Shown here in pieces: positions 9,111 to 63,762 of a DNA stretch of 64,000 nucleotides. The position numbers and the translations under genes are program-made. Source of the stretch: Heteronotia binoei (Eukaryota); NCBI RefSeq assembly GCF_032191835.1, contig NC_083239.1:40114001-40178000 (forward strand). Direction: 5' to 3'. Position 1 is the first letter of the stretch. Each line of letters starts with the position of its first letter. The notes below the pieces were generated by a model, which was given only the letters and a program-made list of their open reading frames with translations, was not told the DNA's origin and ran no database searches.

Positions 9111-11023
9111 TTGCATCTGTGAGGGAGGAGGGGAGTGAGAAGGAATCGGGAAGGAGCATTGTGGAAAAAGGCAACAGTCTGCCGGTGGCAGCAAAACCTG
9201 GGGATCAAGTGGTACCAAAGAGAAAGTGCAAAAGGATAAGGGGCCCAGAACAGAAGCAAAGGAAGGAATTGATTGCCTGTGAGAGCAGATCTAAGCCTGA
9301 GGACCCAGCCCAAGATGAAACAGGGAAGAGAAAGAGAAGGCCTAGCGGTGACACGAACCAGAAAGGGTTCAACAGCAAATTCAATGCTAAAACGTATCAC
9401 AGTGTTCCAGCAGTCTCGGAAAGGTATAAATGCACAGAATGTGGCAAGTGTTTCCGTGGGAGAGGTAATCTAACTATACATCAAAAGATACATACTGGGG
9501 AGAAGCCGTTTAAATGCTCGGAGTGTGGACAGTGCTTCTATCGGAAAGAAAGCCTAACTGCACATCAAAAGATTCATACTGGGGAGAAGCCATATAAATG
9601 CTTGGAGTGTGGGAAATGCTTCTGTCTTCAGGGTTACCTAACTACACATCAAAAGATTCATACTGGGGAGAAGCCATACAAATGCTTGGCATGTGGAAAG
9701 TGTTTCCCTCAAAGTAGCCAGCTAACTTCACATCAAAGGGTTCATACTGGGGAGAAGCCATACACATGCTTGGTTTGTGGAAAATGCTTCTCCTATAGTG
9801 GCAGCCTAGCTACACATCGGAAGATTCATACTGGAGAGAAGCCACATAAATGCTTGGAGTGTGGGAAATCCTTCTGTCAGAAAGATGAACTAATCAAACA
9901 TCAAAGTGTCCACACAGGGGAGAAGCCATATAAATGCTTGGAGTGTGGAAAGTGCTTCTCTTGGAGACAGAGGCTAACTATACATCAAAAGATTCATACT
10001 GGGGAGAAGCCATATAAGTGCTTGGAGTGTGGAAAATGCTTCTCTCAGAATAGTAGCCTCACTAATCATCAAACGGTTCACACAGGGGAGAAGCCATATA
10101 TATGTTTGGAGTGTGGTAAGTGCTTCTCTGTAAGTAGCAGCCTAAGGATGCATGAAAGGTTTCACACAGGGGAGAAGCCGTTTAAATGCTTGGAGTGTGG
10201 AGAGTGCTTCCATCGGAAGGACCGCCTAACAACACATCAAAGGATGCACACTGGGGAGAAGCCATTTAAGTGCTTGGATTGTGGAAAGTGCTTTTCTGTG
10301 AGTAGCACCCTAAAAACACATCAAAAGTTTCATACTGGGGAAAAGCCATATAAATGCTTGGAGTGTGGTAAGTGCTTCTCTTTAAGTAGAAGCCTAAGGA
10401 ATCATCAAAGAGTTCACACAGGGGAGAAGCCATATGAATGTTTGGAGTGTGGAAAATGCTTTTCTTTTGATTCCAGCCTAAGGGTTCATCAAAGGGTTCA
10501 CACAGGAGAGAAGCCGTATAAATGCTCGGTGTGTGGAAAGACCTTTCCTGCACATTCTCAGCTATCTAACCATCAAAGGATTCATACTGGGGAGAAGCCA
10601 TATAAATGCTTGGAGTGTGGAAAATGCTTTTCTGATAATGGTCGCCTAACCAATCATCAGAAGATTCATACTGGGGAGAAGCCTTATAAATGCTTGGAGT
10701 GTGGAAAGTGCTTCTCCCAGAGTAGCCACCTATTTGAACATCAAAAGATTCATACTGGGGAGAAGCCACATAAATGCTTGGAGTGTGGAAAATGCTTCGC
10801 TCAGAAAGGTGGCCTAACCATACATCATAGATTTCACACAGGGGAGAAGCCGTATAAATGCTTGGAGTGTGGAAAATGCTTCTCTCAGCTTGGCCACCTA
10901 ACGACACATCAAAAGATTCATACTGGGGAGAAGCCATATAAATGCTTGGAGTGTGGAAAGTGCTTCTCTGAAAATGCCTACTTAAGGACGCATCAAAAGG
11001 TCCATACTGGGAAGTCAGGCTGA
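9111..11023 (+). CDS. C2H2 zinc-finger exon with 19 tandem intact fingers; terminal coding exon of a KRAB-ZNF (707 aa when joined to either 5' cassette)
   Basis: Acceptor tcttttgcag| at 9110, phase 1. 19 x CxxCGKCF...HxxxH with TGEKP linkers, stop TGA at 11021-11023. join(4912..4992,6648..6777,9111..11023) = 2124 nt, fully open. Confidence 0.95.
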
Positions 11024-30610: not shown

Positions 30611-31909
30611 ATGTCACTCTCCAAACAGCTGGAGTCTCTTGTAGATGAATTAAGCAACTTCGCCTGGAACTCAACCCCACAAAAATATTACAATGTAATA
30701 AACCAGATAATTGAGCTGTTCAAAGATGGAGGAAAGGATGAAATAGTTTCTGAAGCAGAAGAATACCTAAAAATTTGGGAAAGCACGGACCTTAACATTG
30801 CTGTCACCGGAGAGGCAGGAGCTGGGAAATCTCTCTTCATCAATACTATGCTGGGATTGAGTCCTGGTGATGTGGGTGCTGCTCCCATAGGAGTAACGGA
30901 GACAACACAGAAGCCAGATGCTTATTTTCCTCCTAACTTCCCCAATGTGACCTTCTGGGACCTTCCAGGAATTGGAACCCCAGGATTTCCTCCAGAAACA
31001 TACCTTAAACAAGTAAATTTCCACCGTTATGACTTCTTTATCATTATATGCTCAAAGCGGTTCCATTCCACTGATGTTCAGCTAGCTCAAGAGATCGAGG
31101 CCATGGGCAAGAAGTTTTATTTCGTCCGTTCCAAAGTGGATGAAGATTTGAGAAATTCAAAGAGGGCCAATCCTAGGAAATACAGTAAAGAAAAGGTCTT
31201 AAAAGAAATCAAGGATGACTGCAAAAAGAATCTGGAGAAGCACTTGGAGAAGCAGTCCAACCATCAGATCTTCCTGATTGACTGTTGGGATCTTGAGAAG
31301 TTTGACTTCCCTTCCCTGCTAGAGACTTTGGAGGAAGATCTGCCCACCTTGAAGAGTCTGACCTTTGTGCTCAGCCTTCCCAACTGCTCCCCTGAGGTCA
31401 TACAGAAGAAGAAAAAGGCATTGAAGAAACAGTTATGGAAACAAGCTCTAGTTTCTGCTTTCATCAACGCTGTGCCCATCCCAGCCCTTACAATATGTTG
31501 TGATACTGCTTACATAGTGAAGACCATGCTTGGCTTCTACAAGCAGTTTGGGTTGGATGACAGCTCCCTAACTCGATTGGCCTGCTGGATGAAGAAGTCA
31601 GTTGAAGAGCTGAAGGCTGTGATTCAGTCACCACCTGCAAAAGACGTTGGCACAAATCTCTTGGTGAAGGCATTTGGCTCTGTAGTGGGAGGAATACTGA
31701 GCTTTGCTTTTCGCACAAAACGTCTTGTTGCAAGTGGGGTTGCAAGTGGGGTGCTTTCCTTCGTAGCCACATACTACATACTCTCCAAGTTCTTAGATGA
31801 AGCGGCTGAAGATGCTGAAAGAGTTCTCACGATAGCCCAAGAGCACGCCGAGGCAGGAGCTCCGTCTGCCGAAACTCACCTTAAAAGCCAGAAAATCAAA
31901 GTACAATAA
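30611..31909 (+). CDS. Immunity-related GTPase (IRG/p47, IIGP1/IRGC-like, GKS type), 432 aa, single coding exon
   Basis: Acceptor tccccttttatag| at 30605, ATG 30611. G1 GEAGAGKS, G3 DLPGIGT, YDFFII, G4 RSKVD, full C-terminal helical region (LSLPN...KKKKALKKQLW...FGLDDSSL...ATYYILSKFLDEAAEDAERVL). Confidence 0.9.
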   Translation: MSLSKQLESLVDELSNFAWNSTPQKYYNVINQIIELFKDGGKDEIVSEAEEYLKIWESTDLNIAVTGEAGAGKSLFINTMLGLSPGDVGAAPIGVTETTQKPDAYFPPNFPNVTFWDLPGIGTPGFPPETYLKQVNFHRYDFFIIICSKRFHSTDVQLAQEIEAMGKKFYFVRSKVDEDLRNSKRANPRKYSKEKVLKEIKDDCKKNLEKHLEKQSNHQIFLIDCWDLEKFDFPSLLETLEEDLPTLKSLTFVLSLPNCSPEVIQKKKKALKKQLWKQALVSAFINAVPIPALTICCDTAYIVKTMLGFYKQFGLDDSSLTRLACWMKKSVEELKAVIQSPPAKDVGTNLLVKAFGSVVGGILSFAFRTKRLVASGVASGVLSFVATYYILSKFLDEAAEDAERVLTIAQEHAEAGAPSAETHLKSQKIKVQ

Positions 31910-40993: not shown

Positions 40994-41579
40994 GTGAGTT
41001 TACAGACTCTGTTGATTCTTCAACCCCGTACAGGCAAACCATGATCCGGGTTGGTAAACTGGTCTCTCATTACTATTCTCCTCTCTGCCTCTCCGGTGTT
41101 TCTGCAGCTGCTGTTTAGGAATCAGAACGGACAGTTTCAAACACTTAAGTTTTCTTTTCAAATGTGGGCATAAGGCAGGTTTCTCCAAGGGTCACAAGGA
41201 CAATCCCTTTGAAATAATACATCGAAGAATAGTTGGGAGCACCAGTTTGGTGTGGTGGTTTAAGTGCGCGGACTCTAATCTGGGAGAACAGGGTTTGATT
41301 CCCCACTCCTTCACTTGCAGCTGCTGGAATGGCCTTGGGTCAGCCATATCTCTTGCAGAGTTGTCGTTGAAAGGGCAGCTTCTGTCAGAGCTCTCTCAGC
41401 CCCACCCACCTCACAGGGTGCCCGTCGTGTGGGAGGAAGGTAAAGGAGATTGTAAGCCACTCTGAGATTTGGAGTGGAGGGCTACATATTATTCCAATAT
41501 CATCTGCCTTTGAAGAGAGGGTTGCAGAGTAATGTGTCAGGTTCTGCCGTCTGATTATGTATTTCAAGAGCATTTCTTA

Positions 41580-41885
41580 TAGGAAAGGAAAGGTCCCCTG
41601 TGCAAGCACCAGTCGTTTCCGACTCTGGGGTGATGTTGCTTTCACAACGTTTTCATGGCAGACTTTTTACAGGGTGGTTTGCCATTGCCTTCCTCAGTCT
41701 TTTACACTTTCCCCCCAGCAAGCTGGGTAGTCCTTTTACTGACCTCAGAAGGATGGAAGGATGAGTCAACCTTGGGCTGGCTACCTGAATCCAGCTTCCG
41801 CTGGAATCAAACTCAGGTCGTGAGCAGAGAGTTCAGACCACAGTACTGCAGTACTGCTGCTTTACCGCTCTGCGCCACGGGGCCA
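41580..41885 (-). mobile_element. Sauria SINE
   Basis: Full-length reverse-complement copy. Confidence 0.8.
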
Positions 41886-42384
41886 TTTAACAAGTGGCTT
41901 ATAAAACTATGAAGGCAAAAGCCTAGCAATACCTTAAAGACTAACAATATTTATTCCAATATGAGCTTCCATGAGCCTGATGAAGTTTGGAAATAGATGA
42001 CAAAGGTGTGTGTGTGTGTGTGTGGGGGGGGGTCTTCATGATAGAAGTTTATAAAATTATGCCTGGGGTAGAGAAGCCTGGTCTCTCTAGGAGGCCTCCT
42101 CAGAATTGCTGCTTCCAGACCAGAGGGAAGGAGGAAGAGACTAGGCCCAAAACCTTCTTTCAGTTTGACAGCCTCTTCCTGCCAACTCACAGATAACCAT
42201 AGCCTAAAATGGCGTTTCTCCACAGGGGGTAAGAAGGAAAGAGCACAACAAGATTTAGGGGTTCTGGAGCTCCGCTCCTGTGAGCTCCTGCCCAAACTGA
42301 GGCCTGGTCTGAGGAAAATGACATCTGAATATTAAGTAGCAGCCAGAGAACAGTCACAATCTTTGTTTGTTTTTTTCAGATTAG

Positions 42385-43083
42385 CAGAATGATCTGGAAC
42401 AGTTATGGGTGGTCAGAGCGCAACTGAACAGACTGAATGCTTTTGGAAAAACCACACTTGACATTGCTGTCACAGGAGTATGGGGTGCTGGTAAATCATC
42501 CCTCATCAGTGCCTTGGGGAGTCTGTCAGATTTTGATGAGGGGGCAGCTGAAACTGAGGTGACACAAACTACAATGGAGCCAATGTGTTACCCACACCCC
42601 ACTTTTCCAGATGTAAGAATATGGGACCTACCAGGAATTGGAACCCCTGGGTTTGAAGAAAAGGAATACCTAGAAAGGATAAAGGACAGCCAATATGATT
42701 TTTTCATCCTTGTGGCTTGTCATTGCTTCACCACCTATGACATCCAGTTGTCCCATACAATCCGGGAAATGGGGAAACGGTTCTACTATGTGTGGTCCAA
42801 AATGGACGTTAGCATTAGGAATGAAAAACGGAAACCAGACTTCAGTGAGGAAGTGACCCTTCAAAAAGCCAGGAAATATTGCCTCTATCACTTGAAGAGG
42901 GCTGGTATTTCTTCTCCGGTGATTTTCCTCATATCCATTTGGTATCAGGATAAGTATGATTTCCCTCTCCTGAAGAGAGCCTTAGAGAATGAAATCAATG
43001 AACTCAGAAAATGTATCTTAAGAACAGCAGTTTTGCAAGATTCTGAAAAGAGAAGCCATGACAGGTATGTTGGGTTTAGTTAG
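42385..43083 (+). CDS. IRG G-domain-only unit A (exon or short gene; 5' end uncertain)
   Basis: Open frame 42385-43083 with G1 GVWGAGKS, DLPGIGT, YDFFIL, G4 WSKMD, IFLIS and DFPLL, then stops; no C-terminal helical domain. Acceptors at 42379, 42384 or 42387; donor acag|gtatgt at 43065 (phase 2). No in-frame ATG before G1. Confidence 0.6.
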   Translation, partial: QNDLEQLWVVRAQLNRLNAFGKTTLDIAVTGVWGAGKSSLISALGSLSDFDEGAAETEVTQTTMEPMCYPHPTFPDVRIWDLPGIGTPGFEEKEYLERIKDSQYDFFILVACHCFTTYDIQLSHTIREMGKRFYYVWSKMDVSIRNEKRKPDFSEEVTLQKARKYCLYHLKRAGISSPVIFLISIWYQDKYDFPLLKRALENEINELRKCILRTAVLQDSEKRSHDRYVGFS

Positions 43084-44479
43084 GGATTTAATACAGTGAT
43101 GTCGAACTCATGAGGGCCGGATCTGAGCTAAATTGTACTTTTTGAGGCTGGGCTATGCAGCCATGCATTACATAAAATGTAATGCCAGGTAGCAGAGATA
43201 TAAACTTTATAAAGGACTCAGACAAACTCTATCTATCTAACCGAAGAAGAAGAAATTGGATTTATATCCTGCCCTCTACTCTGAATCTCAGCGTGGTCAC
43301 AATCTCCACAACAGACACCCTGTGAGGTAGGTGGGGCTAAGAGAGCTTTTACAGCAGCTGCCCTTTCAAGGACAGCTCTTCAAGAGCTATGGCTGACTTA
43401 AGGGCATCCCAGCAGCTGCAAGTGGAGGAGTGGAGAATCAAGCAGAAACTAAAAATATAAAATGTTCTGAGCCTTGGAAAACATGAAATGGCTGGCCATT
43501 GCAAGCTTCCCCCACCACCACCCCGATCTACTCAGATTGGCAATGGCTCTCCAGTGTAATATTTCCCTTTGGCTGTGGATTTGAATGGACTTGAGAACTG
43601 GTGCCTAGTGAGTACTCTAATGTGAGTACTCACTAGGCACCAGTTCTCAAGTCCATTCAGGAGAGACAAGCTGGCTCAAAGCATCCACCCTATTTGCAAG
43701 GACACAACTCCAGCAAGTAACAGCTTCAGCTGGCCATAGGAATGCTGGAAACTGAAACTGAGCTCCACTGAAACACATTGCAGCACAGACAAAGTTGCAA
43801 GGAAAATGTGGAATGGATTTTCTGTTAAGGTCTCTGGGCCCACATAGACTATCTATCTGGGCACAGAGACCTTAGTGGAAAATCCGTTCCAGATTTTCTG
43901 CATTTTTAGTGTTCATGAACACTGTGGAGAGGAACTTATTTTCCTGATTTTGGAGGGGGGGGGGTGTAAACAGTATGGCAGTTTGTTTTTCTTTAATTGC
44001 TTTTTTCAACACAATGGTATATCAATAAATCACTTATTAATTTGTCGTTCTAATAAGCCGTCATCTAGTAAGATTGTCTTCTGGCAAACTGTTTTGGTAG
44101 CAAGTTTCTTTCAAATAAGTAGGGTATAAATACTTTTATGAATAAAAATGAGGATGTATTTAATAGAATCATAGTGTTGGAAGGGACCTCCAGGGTCATC
44201 TAGTCCAACCCCCCTGCACAATGCAGGAAACTCACAAACACCTTCCCAGTTTTTATTGGGGTCCTTCTGATTATAAATTTAGTTTTAAAAACCTGAAAAA
44301 AATAAAAATGGGGAAGATGTAATACATCTGATAAGGCTGTGTTTTTCTATCCAGGGAGTTTTAAGCGAATTGACACCTCCCCCCTCCCCCAGCAGTTGAA
44401 TCCAGATTGTCAAAGTAAAATGCAGTGGGAGCACTCATTATATGGAGGAGTTATCACAATATTTGTATTTATTTTTCAG

Positions 44480-45209
44480 GTCAAGAAGACACATAGATGG
44501 GAAAAGTTTGATGCCAGTGGCTAGCAGGAAACCTGAAGAGAGGTCTACCGGGAAAGAAAGAAACCTCTCAGATCTGACTGCATCAAGAAAAAACACACTT
44601 GACATTGCCATCACAGGACTGACAGGTGCTGGCAAATCGTCCCTTGTCAACGCCCTGCGGGGTCTATCAGATTTTGATGAGGAAGCAGCCAAAACTGATG
44701 TGATAGAAGGAACAAAAGAGCCAATGGGTTACTCACATCCCGCCTTTCCAGATGTAACAATATGGGACCTGCCAGGAATTGGGACACCTAGTTTTAAAGC
44801 TGAGGAATACCTAGAAAGGGTAAATTACAGCCAATATGATTTCTTCATCATTGTCTCTTCGAATCGCTTCACTGTCTATGACATCCAGCTGTCCCATGCA
44901 ATTCGGAAAATGACAAAGCGGTTCTACTACGTGAGGTCCAAAATGGACCTCAGCATTGAGAATGAAAAACTGAAACCAGATTTCAATGAGGAAACAACCC
45001 TTCAGAAAGTCAGGAAATAATGTTTTGATAGTTTGGTGGAGGCTGGTATCTCTTCTCCACGTATCTTCCTTGTCTCTAGTTGGTATTGGGAGAAGTATGA
45101 TTTTCTATTCCTGCAAAGAGCCTTAGAGGATGAACTTGAGGCTCTGAGGAGACGTATTTTAGGACCCAGATTGAGAAAAGGAGATGACCAGTACGTTGGG
45201 TTGAATTGA
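44480..45209 (+). pseudogene. IRG G-domain-only unit B with in-frame TAA at 45018-45020
   Basis: Acceptor atttttcag| (phase 2), ATG 44511, G1 GLTGAGKS, DLPGIGT, RSKMD. The frame continues after TAA (CFDSLVEAGISSPRIFLVSSWYWEKYDFLFLQRALEDE...DQYVGLN*), colinear with unit A. Confidence 0.7.
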
Positions 45210-47351
45210 TTCTTGATTTGATGCCTTTGAACAAAATTGTATTTAAAAATGGAGATCTGGGCCTATTATGCACGCACAACTTACTGCAAATTTTCTGAGC
45301 AGGAAGCCTTTAATGTTAACTCTGGCACCGATTTCCCACTCACCTTACACGGCTGTCACGTTCCTTCCTTCTGATTTCACACTATCTGCCCCAGGGCTGC
45401 AACTAGTGTTCCCTCTAAGCTGCAGAGTTTTGTGAGCTACTGGCATCAAAGTTGTGAGCTACTGCATAAATTATTGTGCTCTGGGGTCATCCTTCCTGAG
45501 CTAAGACAAAAATGTGTGAGCTGGCGGCTAAAAATCTGAGCTAGCTCACGCTAACTCAGCTTAGAGGGAACACTGGCTGCAACTAGCGTTGATGTTTTTG
45601 CACAGAAAAATTTGTTTGCCGCGCAAAAACGCTGACGTTACTTGCAGCCCCGGGAAGGATAGTGTGAAATCGGAATGAAGTCCCACTGAGAAGAGGAACG
45701 TAAGAGTGGCGTAAGGTGACTGGGAAACCGGTCTGGATTTTGTGCCTGATTTATGTACCTTTCCTTTTCCTCTGGTGCATTTATTCTGCAATTACAATTT
45801 TTAAAATGCACTTTTCTAAATTGGGCTAGAATGTCATTGGACATGAAATAACATCAAATGATATTAGCACCTGACTGTTTTAATGTTTATGTGTAATTTT
45901 AATTATGATGTAATTATGGGTTAATTTATGTGTATTGTGATTTTATGGGCTGTGAGCTGCCCCGAGCCTGCTTCGGCGGGCAGGGCGGGATATAAATCTA
46001 ATAAACCTAAACTTGTGATGTGTGGGGGATGGTGTCCAAAGTTTTTTTTTAAATTTATGCAGTTTCTGTATCACAGCTGAGCAGTAGCATCCAGCAAGGG
46101 CTTTCCACTTAAAATCTTGTGGTGCAGGTTTTGCACCTGCATTTTAATGGTGGTTGGTTGAATGAAAGGGAACAGAAAGGAACACAGGCAAAGGGGGAAA
46201 ACCCAATGTTGAAATTGACAATACCTTTTTTGAAACTGACAAGAAGCTGCAAAGCCCCATTTCTCATATTGGGGCGCACTTGGGGTTTCTCTGCTGTGTT
46301 ATCAGACCCTGTGCAAAATGGGAAAGAGTCACATGATCTCAATATGGGGAAACATGTTGAGTGTACAGTATGCATAGTAGAACTCACTGACATTGGCATT
46401 GCAAGCCATTGATAGTTGGCAATGTCTGTGGGCTGGCTCCGCCTCTTCTGGCTACCATTCTGGGGTTGGCTCCACCTCTTTTGACAGCCATTTTGTGTTT
46501 GCATGCGCCACTCTGTGTCACTTACCCAAAGGTGCCCACAGGCTTAAAAAGGTTGGGGACTCCAATGCAGGCATGAGGAACAAGAAATAAGACCCAATGA
46601 TAGGATGCAGAGAGTGCCAGCAAGAATTGCTGGGGTGGCTAAAACTAAACCAAAGTAAAAAAATCAGAAACAAAAGTCAGAGATCTGACTGACAATTCCC
46701 TAAATGAGTACACTGGGAATGTTTCTGTGTGTGCGCATGCTAGTTTTGGTCTTAACGTGTCTGAGGATGTAGTTTTATACTGCTCTGCAGCCCCTGACTT
46801 GGGCTGAAAGGTGGGACAGAAGTCTTGTTAGTGAAAATAAATTAATGAATCTTTGCCATGACAAAACACCCAGTTGCTATTGAAATGGTGATCCAAATGA
46901 TGAACATTTAAAGAAGTATTTTATTTGCATCATCTCTTGAAAACGAAACAGCTGCACTACAGTCAGAAGGCTGGGGGGTGGAGTTTGTTACAAATATCGC
47001 TAACACTGAGAAATACTCTCCCCCCCCCCAAAAAAGATTTTTTCCTGGTTTTCAAAGTAGTTTTTCTCATGTTATTAAACAAAAATGCATAAGGGATGTT
47101 TTACCATCCATTCCTCTCACTATTCTTTATAAATCAGTAACTATAAGGATCATATGGTGCGTGGGGGGTGCTATTTTCATATTGGGAGCATGGAGGGGCC
47201 CTTTCTCACGACTTGTGGTAGCTTTTGACAGCCAGAAAAGGAGAGCTCTTTTATACTGCTCACTTCACCTTGGAGTTAGAATCCCAAATTCTAGATTTTG
47301 TCTTCCCTCACCAGGACTTGTAAAATTGGGCCCCCAATAAACAGGACTCAA

Positions 47352-48023: not shown

Positions 48024-49025
48024 CTAGACCGACATCTTCTCTTTGCCTTTCAGAACTCTAGAGAGGATGTTTGGGATATAGTTGGTGATGGCTGTTAGGC
48101 ATCTACATAGTAGATGGTAGATGGTAAAAAATAAGTCCATCACTGCCTGAAAGACTGCCACTGGCTTGTCAATGGCCAGAGCTCTAACCAGGCCAAAGAA
48201 TTGGTAGCACTGAGAGCGGAACCCCCCAAGGAAGAACACGGCAGCCTCGAACAAAAGCACTGGCAGACACAGCAAACCCCAAACCCACGAGTACAAGACT
48301 GTGAGCCAATTCTTCCCCTTGTTCTCCAAGACAGATTTCGAGAGGGAACGCAGTCTGAAAATGAACGCTTCCTTCTTCAGCCACAAGAGGTCGCTCTGCA
48401 GCTTCTCCCGCAGGAGGGGGAAGTCAAAGCTCTGGGCGTCCCAGTTGGACACCAGGAAGACTTGGGGATCATTCACATTTTCTCTCAGCAAGCAGGCCGT
48501 GCAGTCCTCCTTGATGTGTTGGAGGACCTTCTCATCGTCATAGCCTGATGGTTGCCGTCTTCGGGATGCCTGCACATCAAGGTCCGTTTTGGCCCGTACA
48601 AAGTAGAACCTCTTGCCCATCGCCTGGATGTCGTGGACCAGTTCAGCGTGGATGGTCCGGAAGCGCTGGTAGCCGACGATAATGAAGAAGTCATAGGCTT
48701 TCAGGTCCTCTTGATTGGTGTGGGAGCCGAAAGATTCTTCTCTCCCGGGCAGGTCCCAGAGGACGACTTGCGGCAGCGTAGGATGTGGGTAATCCCTGGC
48801 CTTCATCGTTGTCATTTGGATGCCAGTCTCTGCAGCACCTGGGTCACCGGAGCATTTGCCCAGCATGCTGTTGATGAAGGAGGATTTTCCTGAGCCTGGT
48901 TCACCCACCACGGCGACATTGAGCAGCGTGTTGCTAAAATACTGCAGCGGTTTTGCATTTGTCATAGAAATGGCCTCTGACAGCTTCCTCTGATGAACAG
49001 CGACCTGAAATTCATCCATAGCCAT
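48024..49025 (-). CDS. Divergent immunity-related GTPase, 333 aa, single coding exon
   Basis: Acceptor cttcttttcgctgcag| at 49039, ATG 49025 (MAMDEFQ). G1 GEPGSGKS, DLPG, YDFFII, RAKTD, VFLVS, DFPLL; paralogue of 62602-63762. Confidence 0.85.
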   Translation of the reverse strand: MAMDEFQVAVHQRKLSEAISMTNAKPLQYFSNTLLNVAVVGEPGSGKSSFINSMLGKCSGDPGAAETGIQMTTMKARDYPHPTLPQVVLWDLPGREESFGSHTNQEDLKAYDFFIIVGYQRFRTIHAELVHDIQAMGKRFYFVRAKTDLDVQASRRRQPSGYDDEKVLQHIKEDCTACLLRENVNDPQVFLVSNWDAQSFDFPLLREKLQSDLLWLKKEAFIFRLRSLSKSVLENKGKNWLTVLYSWVWGLLCLPVLLFEAAVFFLGGFRSQCYQFFGLVRALAIDKPVAVFQAVMDLFFTIYHLLCRCLTAITNYIPNILSRVLKGKEKMSV

Positions 49026-50829
49026 CGATCTGGGTGTTCTGCAGCGAAAAGAAGGAGGAAGATTTTTAGCGTCACCGATTCCTAACACTGTTTTTAAAAT
49101 AAGAAACTTTTCTGCTATTCATTTTCCTTTTTAAAATGTGTGTGTGTGTGTATATATATAAATTATTTATAGCCCAACTTTCTCTCTGGAACTCAAGGAG
49201 GTTTACATAGGGTGAGTCGATGAGATCAATGGGACGGGGTGTCCAGTAAACAATGCAACAGAATTGCACTGGAACTCTTAAAACAGAATTAAAGCAAAGC
49301 ATAAGTATAAACACGACACATTAAATGATGCAAAAATACGTACCAGCAAGCTACACACACAGTATAGACCAGGGGTTGATTAACCTAAGAGCCACAGAAT
49401 AAAAATCAGATGTTTGAGAGCCACAAGACATGAATGTCAGAGGAAGGAAGGAAGGAAAATAGATGAGGGGAGGGGGTGAAATAGAGAGGTGGAAAGAAAG
49501 CAACTTTAACTTTAAAAGCATTCTTCAAGCCATTGTACACTGGCTGGCTTGGAGAAGTGATTTAAAGCAACAAATTTGGGGGTTGGGCTAGATGACCCTG
49601 GTGGTCCCTTCCAACTCTATGATTCCATGAAATGCCTTCTCCATGGCAGCAAGTTTGGGGTTGGTGGGCGGGTTGGTTGGAGTCTTACTTCAACGGGAGA
49701 GACCACAAGGGGGCAGAATGATCAAGCCCCTTCTTTCCCCATGCTGCAGGCTCAACAGTCAGCTGCTATTTGCTTTTCGTTTCAGGTGGCGGCAGTACCG
49801 CTGTACCGGAGATGAGTAAGACTTGAGTCCGGCAGCACCTTAGAAGCTAACAAGATTTCTGGAGCATGAGCTTCTGAGAGTCAACGTTTCTCGCGCCAGA
49901 TATTTGTTTCTAACAAATGCTGGGGAGTCCTGGTTGTCTCTCCCCCCCCAGTGCCAGGTCTGGCTAGATATCCCTGGGGAATCAGCTGGCTAGGAAGGCA
50001 GAGGAGATGCTTTGACTGGTGAAATGTCTGGCTGAACTTTCTCCCTTGCCGGCTTTGGTGCCTGAAAATTGCACGCTGGAAGACCTGCCTAATTCTGCCT
50101 CTCGGGGTTGCCAAGTGGCCCGGAGAAATATAAAAACAGCTGCCCGTTTAGTAGACACTTAACAGCATCTCATTCAGGTAGATCCAGGTTGGTCTGAAGC
50201 AGTAGAACAAAGTAGGAGTCCAGTGGCACCTTTAAGCCCGACAAAGTTTAATTCAGAAGGGAAGCTTTCGTCTGCATGCACACTTTTATCAGATAATGAA
50301 ATGAGGTACAGTGAGCAGAGCTACTTATAGCTGGTGGGCAGCGGTTAAGAATGTAAAGTGATAAAAAAAAGAGTTAGGATCTAATGGCAAAATAGTGTAA
50401 TAAACGAACTGAAAGAGCATTTGGTCTGGATAGCATTTCTGGGAAACCCATAAAGGATAATAACAGTTGCTGATTAATTACTCTTGCAACAAGTCTAGGT
50501 AAAACAAAAGGACATGCATTTCCCAGTGTTCTTGTCCACCTAATTCATTCATGTCATGATGTGAAGTGTTTTGTTTTATTTTTTAAAACATTTCCCACTT
50601 TTATTCAGAGGGTACGGCATTTTTCGCCCTGCCTGTTGGCAACCAGACTCTTCAGATCTTTCCTCTGTGGCACACCCCTAGCTCAAGAGCCCCCGACCCC
50701 AAAAATGCAGCTGAAAGGGCAATCCAATGCTCCTTTGCTTCCCCCCCCCCCATTCCCCAACTCTCCCTTGCCTTCTCTGCCTGAGAGCTTTGCACAGAGA
50801 CATTTTGCATCTGACCAAGGGTAACAGAG

Positions 50830-62601: not shown

Positions 62602-63762
62602 CTAGATCGGCATCTTCTCTTTGCCTTCCAGAGCTCTAGAGAGGACGTTTTGGGTATCTTTGGCGACGGCTGCTAGGCATCTATGCAACATGTAGTAGCT
62701 GGTAAAAAATGAAGGAACTCCTGCTAACAAGGAGCCGGCGTAGGGGTAGCGTTGCCACCAACAAATTTCCATCATTATCAGAACGGCTCCTAGAAGGTCG
62801 GGAAGTCTCCAAAGAATCAGGGGCATTAGCTTTCTGGACGTCATCACTGCCTGAAGAGCCGCCACTGGTTTGCCAACATCCCTCGCTAGAGCTGTGAGCG
62901 ACGGGACATCTAAGCCAAAGAATTGGTAGCACTGATTGCGGAACCTCACAAAGAAGAACATGGCGGCTGCGAACGAGATCCCAGGCAGGGGCAGCAAACC
63001 CAAAACCCCCGAGTAGAGGGCCGGGAGCAAAATCTTCCCCTTCATCGTGGCCTGCTTGTTCTCTAAGACGGGTGCAGAGAGGGAAGGTAGGCTGAAAATG
63101 AATGCTTGCCTCTTCAGCCACAAGAGGTCGTTATTTAGTTTCTCCCACAGGATGGGGAAGTCAAAGCTCTGGGGGTCCCAGTTGGACACCAGGAAGACTT
63201 GGGGGTCGATCACGTTTTCGTTCAGCAAGCAGGTCACGCAGTCTTCCTTGATGCGTTGGAGGACCGTCCGGTCGTCGTAGCCCGACGGCTGCCGTCTCCG
63301 GGACGCCTCCACGTCGAGGTCCGTTTTGGCTCGTACGAAATAGAACCTCTTCCCCATCGCCTGGATGTCGTGGACCAGTTCAGCGTGGATGGTCCGGAAG
63401 CGCTGGTAGCCGACGATAATGAAGAAGTCATAGCACTTCAGGTCCTCTGGATTGGTGCGGGAGCCGAAAGATTCTTCTCTTCCGGGCAGGTCCCAGAGGA
63501 TGACCTGTGGAAGTGTCGGATGCGGGTAATCCTTGGCCTTCGTCGTCGTTGCTTGGATGCCGGTCTCTGCAGCACCCGGATCGCCTGGCTGTTTGCCCAG
63601 CATGCTGTTGACAAAGGAGGATTTCCCCGAGCCTGGCTCACCCACCACGGCGACATTGATTGGGGTGTTGCTAAAATACTGCAGCGGTTTCGCCTGCACC
63701 ACGGAGATGGCATCTGACAGCTTCCCCTGATGAATAGCGACCTGGAATTCTTCCATAGCCAT
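62602..63762 (-). CDS. Divergent immunity-related GTPase, 386 aa, single coding exon
   Basis: Acceptor ccttttctctgcag| about 15 nt before the ATG (MAMEEFQ). G1 GEPGSGKS, DLPG, RAKTD, VFLVS, full IRG-like C-terminus (FFGLDVPSL...TSYYMLHRCLAAVAKDTQNVL). Confidence 0.9.
   Translation of the reverse strand: MAMEEFQVAIHQGKLSDAISVVQAKPLQYFSNTPINVAVVGEPGSGKSSFVNSMLGKQPGDPGAAETGIQATTTKAKDYPHPTLPQVILWDLPGREESFGSRTNPEDLKCYDFFIIVGYQRFRTIHAELVHDIQAMGKRFYFVRAKTDLDVEASRRRQPSGYDDRTVLQRIKEDCVTCLLNENVIDPQVFLVSNWDPQSFDFPILWEKLNNDLLWLKRQAFIFSLPSLSAPVLENKQATMKGKILLPALYSGVLGLLPLPGISFAAAMFFFVRFRNQCYQFFGLDVPSLTALARDVGKPVAALQAVMTSRKLMPLILWRLPDLLGAVLIMMEICWWQRYPYAGSLLAGVPSFFTSYYMLHRCLAAVAKDTQNVLSRALEGKEKMPI

Follow-up and report, generated by a model that had tools for sequence, protein, structure and literature searches.

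Do two neighbouring short units of the IRG family, each covering a G domain, form one spliced gene for a double GTPase, do they encode two separate short proteins, or are they what is left of a larger gene? IRG proteins are textbook single-exon, cell-autonomous resistance GTPases, and the question is raised by a locus of the gecko Heteronotia binoei, in which two such units, A and B, follow one another on the + strand. The locus lies in a 64-kb stretch of the chromosome-scale contig NC_083239.1 (C17), positions 40,114,001-40,178,000; we refer to this whole stretch as the window, and all coordinates are positions within it unless a contig position is stated. The initial annotation of the window had proposed either a multi-GTPase with one exon per G domain or an independent truncation resembling human IRGM, plausibly an inhibitor or decoy. 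Our analysis suggests that A-B is probably a transcribed, correctly spliced and recently disabled chimeric remnant of a tandem IRG family of squamates.

Exon A (42380..43064, +) and exon B (44480..45190, +) both match the IIGP/IRG G domain (Pfam PF05049; E 7.6e-62 for A and 5e-54 for B) over profile positions ~27-234 of 375, and the N-terminal helices and the C-terminal helical domain of the profile are absent from both. Both units are thus G domain only, and a single uninterrupted open reading frame (ORF) over two complete p47 units is not present at the locus. The G motifs are GVWGAGKS in A and GLTGAGKS in B, with DLPG and SKMD in each, and the P-loops are of the GKS type; the closest solved structures are Irgb6, Irgb10 and Irga6 (E ~1e-40). 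At the DNA level A and B are 79% identical (42429-42993 versus 44569-45134), and the homology reaches into the acceptor flank (TCACAAT.TTTGT...TTTTTCAG) as well as the donor flank (GATGAC..GTAYGTTGGGTT). Exon A is preceded by an acceptor (pyrimidine tract and CAG, 42377..42379, +) that is common to all family units, although the RNA contigs did not show its use here, and ends at the phase-2 donor AG/GTATGT after 43064. The following phase-2 intron of 1415 nt (GT..AG, 43065..44479, +) closes with the acceptor AG of B (44478-44479, +), and exon B starts at 44480 in phase 2, giving the fused frame ...SHD-R-SRRHIDG... that the initial annotation had read. B itself ends at a weak donor-like CA/GTACGT, also of phase 2 (45190/45191). 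Reading through instead of splicing leads to RYVGFS and a stop past A (43081-43083, +) and to QYVGLN and a TGA stop past B (45207-45209, +); the donor-like site and these aligned ends are present as originally described.

To follow the predicted splice in RNA, we aligned contigs of three RNA-seq runs from one study to 41300-47200. Each feature is supported by single low-depth Logan contigs, which show presence and not absence or transcript ends. The A-B junction was recovered in one X1 contig (780 nt, depth 12) that aligns to 42521-43061 and then to 44477-44715; a 3-nt shift of the joint 43061/44477 gives 43064/44480, with GT..AG borders and 239 nt on the shorter side. The contig is ~2.7% off the window, and the paralogues reach at most 83% identity. 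Because it is far closer to the window than to any paralogue, we assign it to the A-B locus on another haplotype or lineage. The identical junction is found in the RefSeq protein XP_060113691.1 (P0121), a 343-aa 'interferon-gamma-inducible GTPase 10-like [Heteronotia binoei]', which spans from the internal MEPMCYPHP of A, past the P-loop, to ...VRK ahead of a TAA. This protein is the longest A-B ORF and is without the P-loop of A and without the last third of B. The A-B splice is therefore already annotated in RefSeq, and the sole ORF modelled there is doubly truncated.

On the 3' side of B, the boundary 45190/45191 is crossed unspliced by RNA contigs (one at 45154-45273, X2 contigs at 45144-45345). 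Coverage continues at 45281-45436 and 45869-46022, and no contig shows a joint leaving 45190. The end of one contig, at 46022, falls 17 nt past an AATAAA at 46000-46005. The unspliced RNA over the donor-like site, together with the contig end by the AATAAA, suggests that B behaves as a last exon, and the segment 45191..46022 (+) would hold the QYVGLN tail followed by a presumed 3' untranslated region. A tblastn search with the three complete IRG proteins of the window recovered no complete unit and no C-terminal IRG domain 3' of B on the + strand between 45209 and 48024, and a blastn comparison with the paralogous loci L031-L034 recovered nothing on the + strand between 45260 and 48024. X1 also has two contigs over 45062-45183, one equal to the window and the other with 4 differences, which points to a sample with two haplotypes ~3% apart, or to a pool.

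The architecture to which A and B belong was evident from the rest of the IRG cluster, which extends over 0.7 Mb of the H. binoei genome. Six other short units lie at five intact loci, 30-130 kb downstream of A-B on the same strand, and each of these loci has a complete unit (413-435 codons) ~1-2 kb past its last short unit, so that the family layout is one or two G-only exons followed by a complete IRG exon. A phase-2 acceptor, read as ..(F/L)R-ST.. across the splice, is common to short and complete units, and all short units end in (A/G)G at a phase-2 donor, GTATGTTGGG. A and B likewise carry the phase-2 acceptor and the donor GTATGTTGGG of a G-only exon and belong to the short-unit clade. 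In the first units an ATG 20-30 nt past the acceptor opens a protein beginning MGGKSST, MGGKNST, MGIGSST or MEGKSST; three of these four starts fit MGxxxS, the N-myristoylation pattern used by Irga6. In three of the complete units (L022f, L034f and L035f) no Met precedes G1, so that they can be translated only as fusions. XP_060114413.1 (P0001, 633 aa) is a fusion exactly as predicted, ...RILRTTDK/STKPSKQ..., and the three-unit arrangement L031a-L031b-L022f has its counterpart in an 842-aa protein of Gekko kuhli. A further RefSeq protein, XP_060113694.1 (P0265, 1290 aa), runs from L033 to L034 as short-complete-short-complete by way of a mini-exon translated ISNEADGQ; it appears to be a four-unit gene model joining two neighbouring tandem genes, an isoform that is predicted only. 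The proposal of a modular multi-GTPase with one exon per G domain thus holds for the paralogues, which assemble symmetric phase-2 exons into proteins with two or three G domains, and with four according to one gene model. Two of the tandem genes, L034 and L035 (contig ~40247190 and ~40282713), are nearly identical whole-gene copies 35 kb apart; their short units do not differ at all and their complete units differ at 2 residues. From sequence, this could be either a very recent segmental duplication or an assembly duplication.

Our view of this design in squamates is based on the H. binoei genome, on a single locus of Gekko and on the gene models available for other members of the group. At the Gekko locus, L037 of Gekko japonicus, the acceptor, the ATG and the donor are all shared, down to GTATGTTGGGTTTAAT, and a complete IRG unit lies downstream. 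The two-G-domain layout recurs in five squamate lineages, in gene models of seven gecko species and of Rhineura, Anolis, Sceloporus, Pogona, Elgaria and Podarcis, with an MG start, the first P-loop at residue 25-50, a P-loop spacing of 245-257 and 345 residues past the second P-loop. Gene models of some turtles and cichlids show comparable tandems with a short first unit. These results do not support the proposed IRGM-like truncation, since both the H. binoei paralogues and the G. japonicus locus have a downstream exon with a complete unit and a normal C-terminal domain, an outcome that the initial annotation itself had named as refuting, and A-B is a broken derivative without that exon.

Alignment with the intact paralogues revealed that the A-B frame is broken in the reference. 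In A, a 2-nt gap relative to the closest paralogue L031a (~42428, within 42426..42432, +; MAFFT alignment) is the source of a frameshift. The family start codon (MGGQSA..., 42405..42461, +), located by alignment with L031a and other short units, is now out of frame with the G domain of A and opens an 18-codon ORF that stops at the TGA 42459-42461. No in-frame ATG stands ahead of G1, and the G-domain frame carries a TAG at 42382-42384, directly past the acceptor. The Gekko kuhli protein P0122 has an uninterrupted in-frame equivalent of this start region, MGGQSSAERRLDVFEKNT. We considered an upstream start that might rescue A and rejected it; given the TAG just after the acceptor, only a cryptic acceptor could restore the frame, and there was no evidence for one. 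The sole RNA contig over the 5' part of A (X2 contig 8) has 21 letters unplaced upstream of 42430, exactly at the 2-nt gap, and these may stem from an indel allele whose frame is intact or from a junction farther upstream. In B, an ATA replaces the family ATG (44493..44495, +; ..RRHIDGKS.. here and ..RRAMGGKSS.. elsewhere in the alignment), and an in-frame TAA interrupts the G domain (45018..45020, +), where A and all paralogues have TAT or TGT. The divergent RNA haplotype has TAT at 45018-45020 and no stop, but carries a +1 insertion, an extra C after 44947, that leads to stops within 4 codons. The initial annotation was therefore right that A and B are G-domain-only units, but its reading of both as proteins stopping right after the G domain does not stand, A having no in-frame ATG before G1 and B the in-frame TAA.

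The same lesions bear on the suggestion that A and B encode two separate short G-domain proteins ending in RYVGFS and QYVGLN, which we regard as extremely improbable. Aligned read-through stops are indeed present, RNA reads through the donor-like site of B, and short-only gene models occur in Gekko (P0266-P0268, P0270). The idea is nevertheless already contradicted in the reference sequence, where A is without a usable start and B, its ATG lost, is interrupted; in RNA, A is spliced to B; and the YVGF tail is the conserved intron start (GTATGTTGGG) that follows every short exon, also in Gekko. The first 12-16 intron bases (GTATGTTGGGTT) are conserved past each short exon, at L031-L035, at L037 and in the window at 43065-43083 and 45191-45209, so that any protein made from unspliced RNA would finish in a YVGF-type tail and meet a stop shortly afterwards. 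This conservation could reflect a splicing element or a conserved short isoform.

The lesions might also be artefactual or private to the sequenced animal, the normal gene of the species being intact either as A-B or as A-B with the missing complete unit. We consider this very unlikely. The 2-nt gap falls within a short AG-rich stretch, the stop codon is polymorphic, and null and copy-number polymorphism of mouse IRG clusters is known (PMC3810784). Such an account would, however, have to explain three independent lesions in one locus, a RefSeq coding sequence (CDS) built around them with no low-quality-protein flag, and a divergent haplotype with a frameshift of its own. It is also at odds with the paralogous homology of B, which ends just past the donor, so that the complete unit is missing structurally and not by base error.

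We traced the origin of both units with a maximum-likelihood tree of G domains, in which the short units form one clade (support 100/99). Within it, A pairs with L031a, which opens the three-unit gene (98/91), and B groups with L032s and L034s, the first units of two-unit genes (97/94). B retains the long Ser/Glu-rich leader of those first units and ~400 nt of their upstream DNA. Homology between B and the loci L032 and L034 breaks off 30-70 nt past the donor (~45222-45260), whereas L032 and L034 align with each other throughout their introns and complete units; B must therefore have been duplicated as a head alone and inserted behind A. The donor of A now uses the acceptor that once received the leader exon of B itself. 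The mini-exon of P0265 was sought as this former 5' leader but was not found in 9 kb around L034. In an intact gene, L031b appears to be an earlier capture of this kind. Pairwise ratios of nonsynonymous to synonymous divergence (dN/dS) were 0.37-0.51 for A and B and 0.26-0.54 for intact units, and the dS of B was 0.34 to the Gekko orthologue and 0.29-0.30 to paralogues. The similarity of these ratios to those of intact units, together with the dS distances of B, suggests that the units were long under constraint and that the lesions are recent. Between the reference and the RNA contigs we counted 23 nonsynonymous and 7 synonymous differences (A 8/5, B 15/2), an approximately neutral ratio overall, from few sites in single contigs.

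The initial annotation had drawn attention to residues of the catalytic interface, which we placed in A and B by an offset of 45 from an alignment with 1tq4. The G interface of Irga6 includes E77, G103 and E106, of which E106 is essential for hydrolysis; an E106Q protein still oligomerises but cannot activate hydrolysis (PMC4774019, PMC3042988). The corresponding residues are V/E/Q in A and L/D/E in B, so the replacements had been read correctly, but they are not special to this locus. First units of squamates have D at 103 in nearly all cases, second units keep G103 and have Q at 106 in most, and in geckos E77 is replaced in both units. Being a family-wide signature, the replacements indicate nothing specific about A-B, and the inhibitor or decoy idea cannot rest on them. 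A rule of exactly one Glu106 per tandem protein was also tried; it holds for the intact H. binoei copies and most gecko models but fails in Iguania, Lacertidae and Rhineura, which have Q in both units.

We further modelled how the G domains of an intact product might pair by folding the two halves of XP_060114413.1 as separate chains, in three runs and with three controls. The predicted pairing reached an interface score (ipSAE) of 0.73, compared to 0.00 for the best control; 51 of 78 solved complexes attain this mark, as do 2 of 108 mismatched pairs. The runs shared at least 97% of contacts, and the partner pLDDT was at least 79. The predicted interface is symmetric, involves the P-loop, switch I, switch II and the G4 region, and is head-to-head as in the solved Irga6 dimer. 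This would fit an asymmetric G dimer built into the proteins of the intact family, with Glu106 kept, in geckos, by the first module alone.

Taken together, these data suggest how the locus arose. A normal gene of the family has a 5' leader exon and then a first coding exon with an ATG and a myristoylation-like MGxxxS start, encoding a G domain only and ending at a phase-2 donor on the boundary between G domain and helical domain. An optional second G-only exon may follow, and the last exon, Met-less in several copies, adds a complete IRG unit through its phase-2 acceptor. The product is a protein of ~630 aa with two G domains, paired head to head in modelling like the Irga6 G dimer. At A-B, the head of a three-unit-type gene (A) splices to the head of a two-unit-type gene (B) that was duplicated without its intron or complete unit; for that reason B acts as the last exon and transcripts run into flanking DNA. 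In this account the homology, the junction, the lesions, the architecture of the family and the derivation of both units are directly shown, whereas the loss of protein function, the recent date of the lesions and an intramolecular G dimer are inferred. Several observations weigh against a disabled remnant. The long-term dN/dS of A and B is not above that of intact paralogues and the G1, G3 and G4 motifs are intact, so that decay would have to have set in recently or to reflect, in part, a null confined to one allele. Transcripts are still made from the locus and still spliced. The only contig over the frameshift site of A (X2, from 42430) has its 21 unplaced letters right there, and one low-depth Logan contig per feature, from one study, makes up the RNA support. 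Finally, the pairing result may reflect a solved Irga6 G dimer that the predictor had memorised.

Some of these points would also fit a working truncated protein. Its product could be the 343-aa protein, in which A is without the P-loop and B extends as far as G4, or else, on other haplotypes, a pair of G domains with a myristoylated start and no helical domain. In the manner of IRGM or the GMS regulators, either product could use the G interface to regulate neighbouring IRGs or to serve as their decoy. Transcription, splicing and the RefSeq CDS agree with this proposal, as does the long-term constraint on both units; the stop in B is missing on one RNA haplotype, G1-G4 of B are kept on both, human IRGM is likewise cut just ahead of G5 (PMC1297648), and G-G pairing is plausible, from the model, for the tandem family. 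We nevertheless consider it rather unlikely. The 343-aa ORF begins past the P-loop of A, behind upstream ATGs at 42389, 42405 and 42437, two different disabling changes are found in B on two haplotypes, and the recent substitutions in B (15 nonsynonymous and 2 synonymous) look neutral. Moreover, the H. binoei genome has no intact family member without a complete unit. A recently disabled remnant, in which protein function would have been lost, remains our preferred interpretation of A-B.

Comparison with known IRG systems places the family more precisely. In the mouse Irgb tandems (Irgb2-b1, Irgb5-b4 and others), two adjacent units are transcribed from a shared promoter; removal of the spacer by splicing joins them in a single ORF, and the downstream unit lacks both a leader and a start (PMC1297648, PMC3810784). 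The gecko paralogues behave likewise, their units being joined by splicing. However, both mouse units are complete p47 units, together 94 kDa, whereas the gecko upstream unit or units are G domain only, with an MGxxxS start and a phase-2 donor at the domain boundary; A-B differs further in having neither a complete unit nor an intact ORF. In zebrafish irgg-irgq1, a C-terminally truncated IRG unit is spliced to an adjacent downstream IRG-like unit (PMC1297648). Its second unit is a truncated quasi-GTPase, whereas that of squamates is a complete GKS-type IRG; the likeness between the two is one of layout. The squamate 'interferon-inducible GTPase 5-like' models of ~630 aa (for example XP_060114413.1 of H. 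binoei and P0002 of G. japonicus) share with A-B the exon cassettes, splice phases, MGG start and sequence clade; A-B differs from them in joining two heads without a terminal complete unit and in its frameshifted start, lost ATG and stop. Human IRGM is an expressed IRG fragment cut at both ends to about the G domain and was once presumed to be a pseudogene (PMC1297648). Its likeness to A-B lies in being an expressed fragment of about a G domain, but it is a single unit of the GMS subfamily driven by an ERV9 long terminal repeat, while A and B are GKS-type units of a tandem cassette system whose normal product keeps a complete unit. GMS regulators show interface changes of the E106R, D164H, R159Q type (PMC3042988), and A and B do not share GMS features, their P-loops being GKS and position 106 being Q in A and E in B.

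Other features of the window and its surroundings were also recorded. A pattern scan of the A-B intron identified a perfect match to an interferon-stimulated response element (ISRE-like GAAACTGAAAC, 43748..43758, +) ~730 nt 5' of exon B, which could possibly, as a guess, be a relic of the former promoter of B. The intron holds two near-perfect palindromes, 43582-43659 (78 nt, 95% self-complementary) and 43802-43898 (97 nt, 82%), and the ISRE-like motif sits between them. Outside the window, a short-type fragment at C17:40100480-40100797 (-) is 65% identical to residues 15-120 of A within a 163-codon open frame, which suggests that the cluster may contain more orphan heads. Three single-unit IRG genes of a different clade lie in the window at 30611-31909 (+), 48024-49088 (-) and 62602-63762 (-) and keep E77 (GEAGAGKS, GEPGSGKS). 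In the copy at 48024 (354 aa) the IIGP match ends at profile position 244, and the C-terminal domain is accordingly diverged or truncated compared to the copy at 62602 (386 aa). A KZNF-type gene stands by the IRG cluster, with a 634-codon ORF (9119-11023, +) that consists nearly throughout of ~19 tandem C2H2 zinc fingers with HTGEKPY/F linkers.

A broader proposal would treat the phase-2 G-domain cassettes as a combinatorial system, in which duplicated heads are captured again and again as additional internal exons and read-through splicing across neighbouring genes yields products of two to four G domains. L031b would then date from an early capture and B from a late one, and the 1290-aa model would represent a product of four units; gecko copies would have built-in asymmetric G dimers with one Glu106 and one Gln106 site; and A-B, instead of being a dead gene, would be a helix-less double-G regulator or decoy that is still segregating, carried by some of the haplotypes of H. 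binoei. We put this forward as speculation that is unlikely to be correct as a whole.

The significance of the locus lies mainly in the family to which it leads. In mouse, the tandem Irgb2-b1 decides resistance to virulent Toxoplasma. The squamate design differs from the mouse tandems in placing a G-domain-only first module with a myristoylation-like start ahead of a complete IRG unit, and its symmetric phase-2 exons can be duplicated, captured or skipped with the frame kept. Interface residues are altered systematically, G103 being replaced by D in the first module and E106 by Q in the second. A literature search on squamate and reptile IRG tandems found no paper describing this design, although automatic annotation already has the proteins. 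Taken alone, A-B has modest value as a snapshot of cassette shuffling followed by loss, and possibly as a polymorphism, null or functional, within a species complex to which hybrid parthenogens belong.

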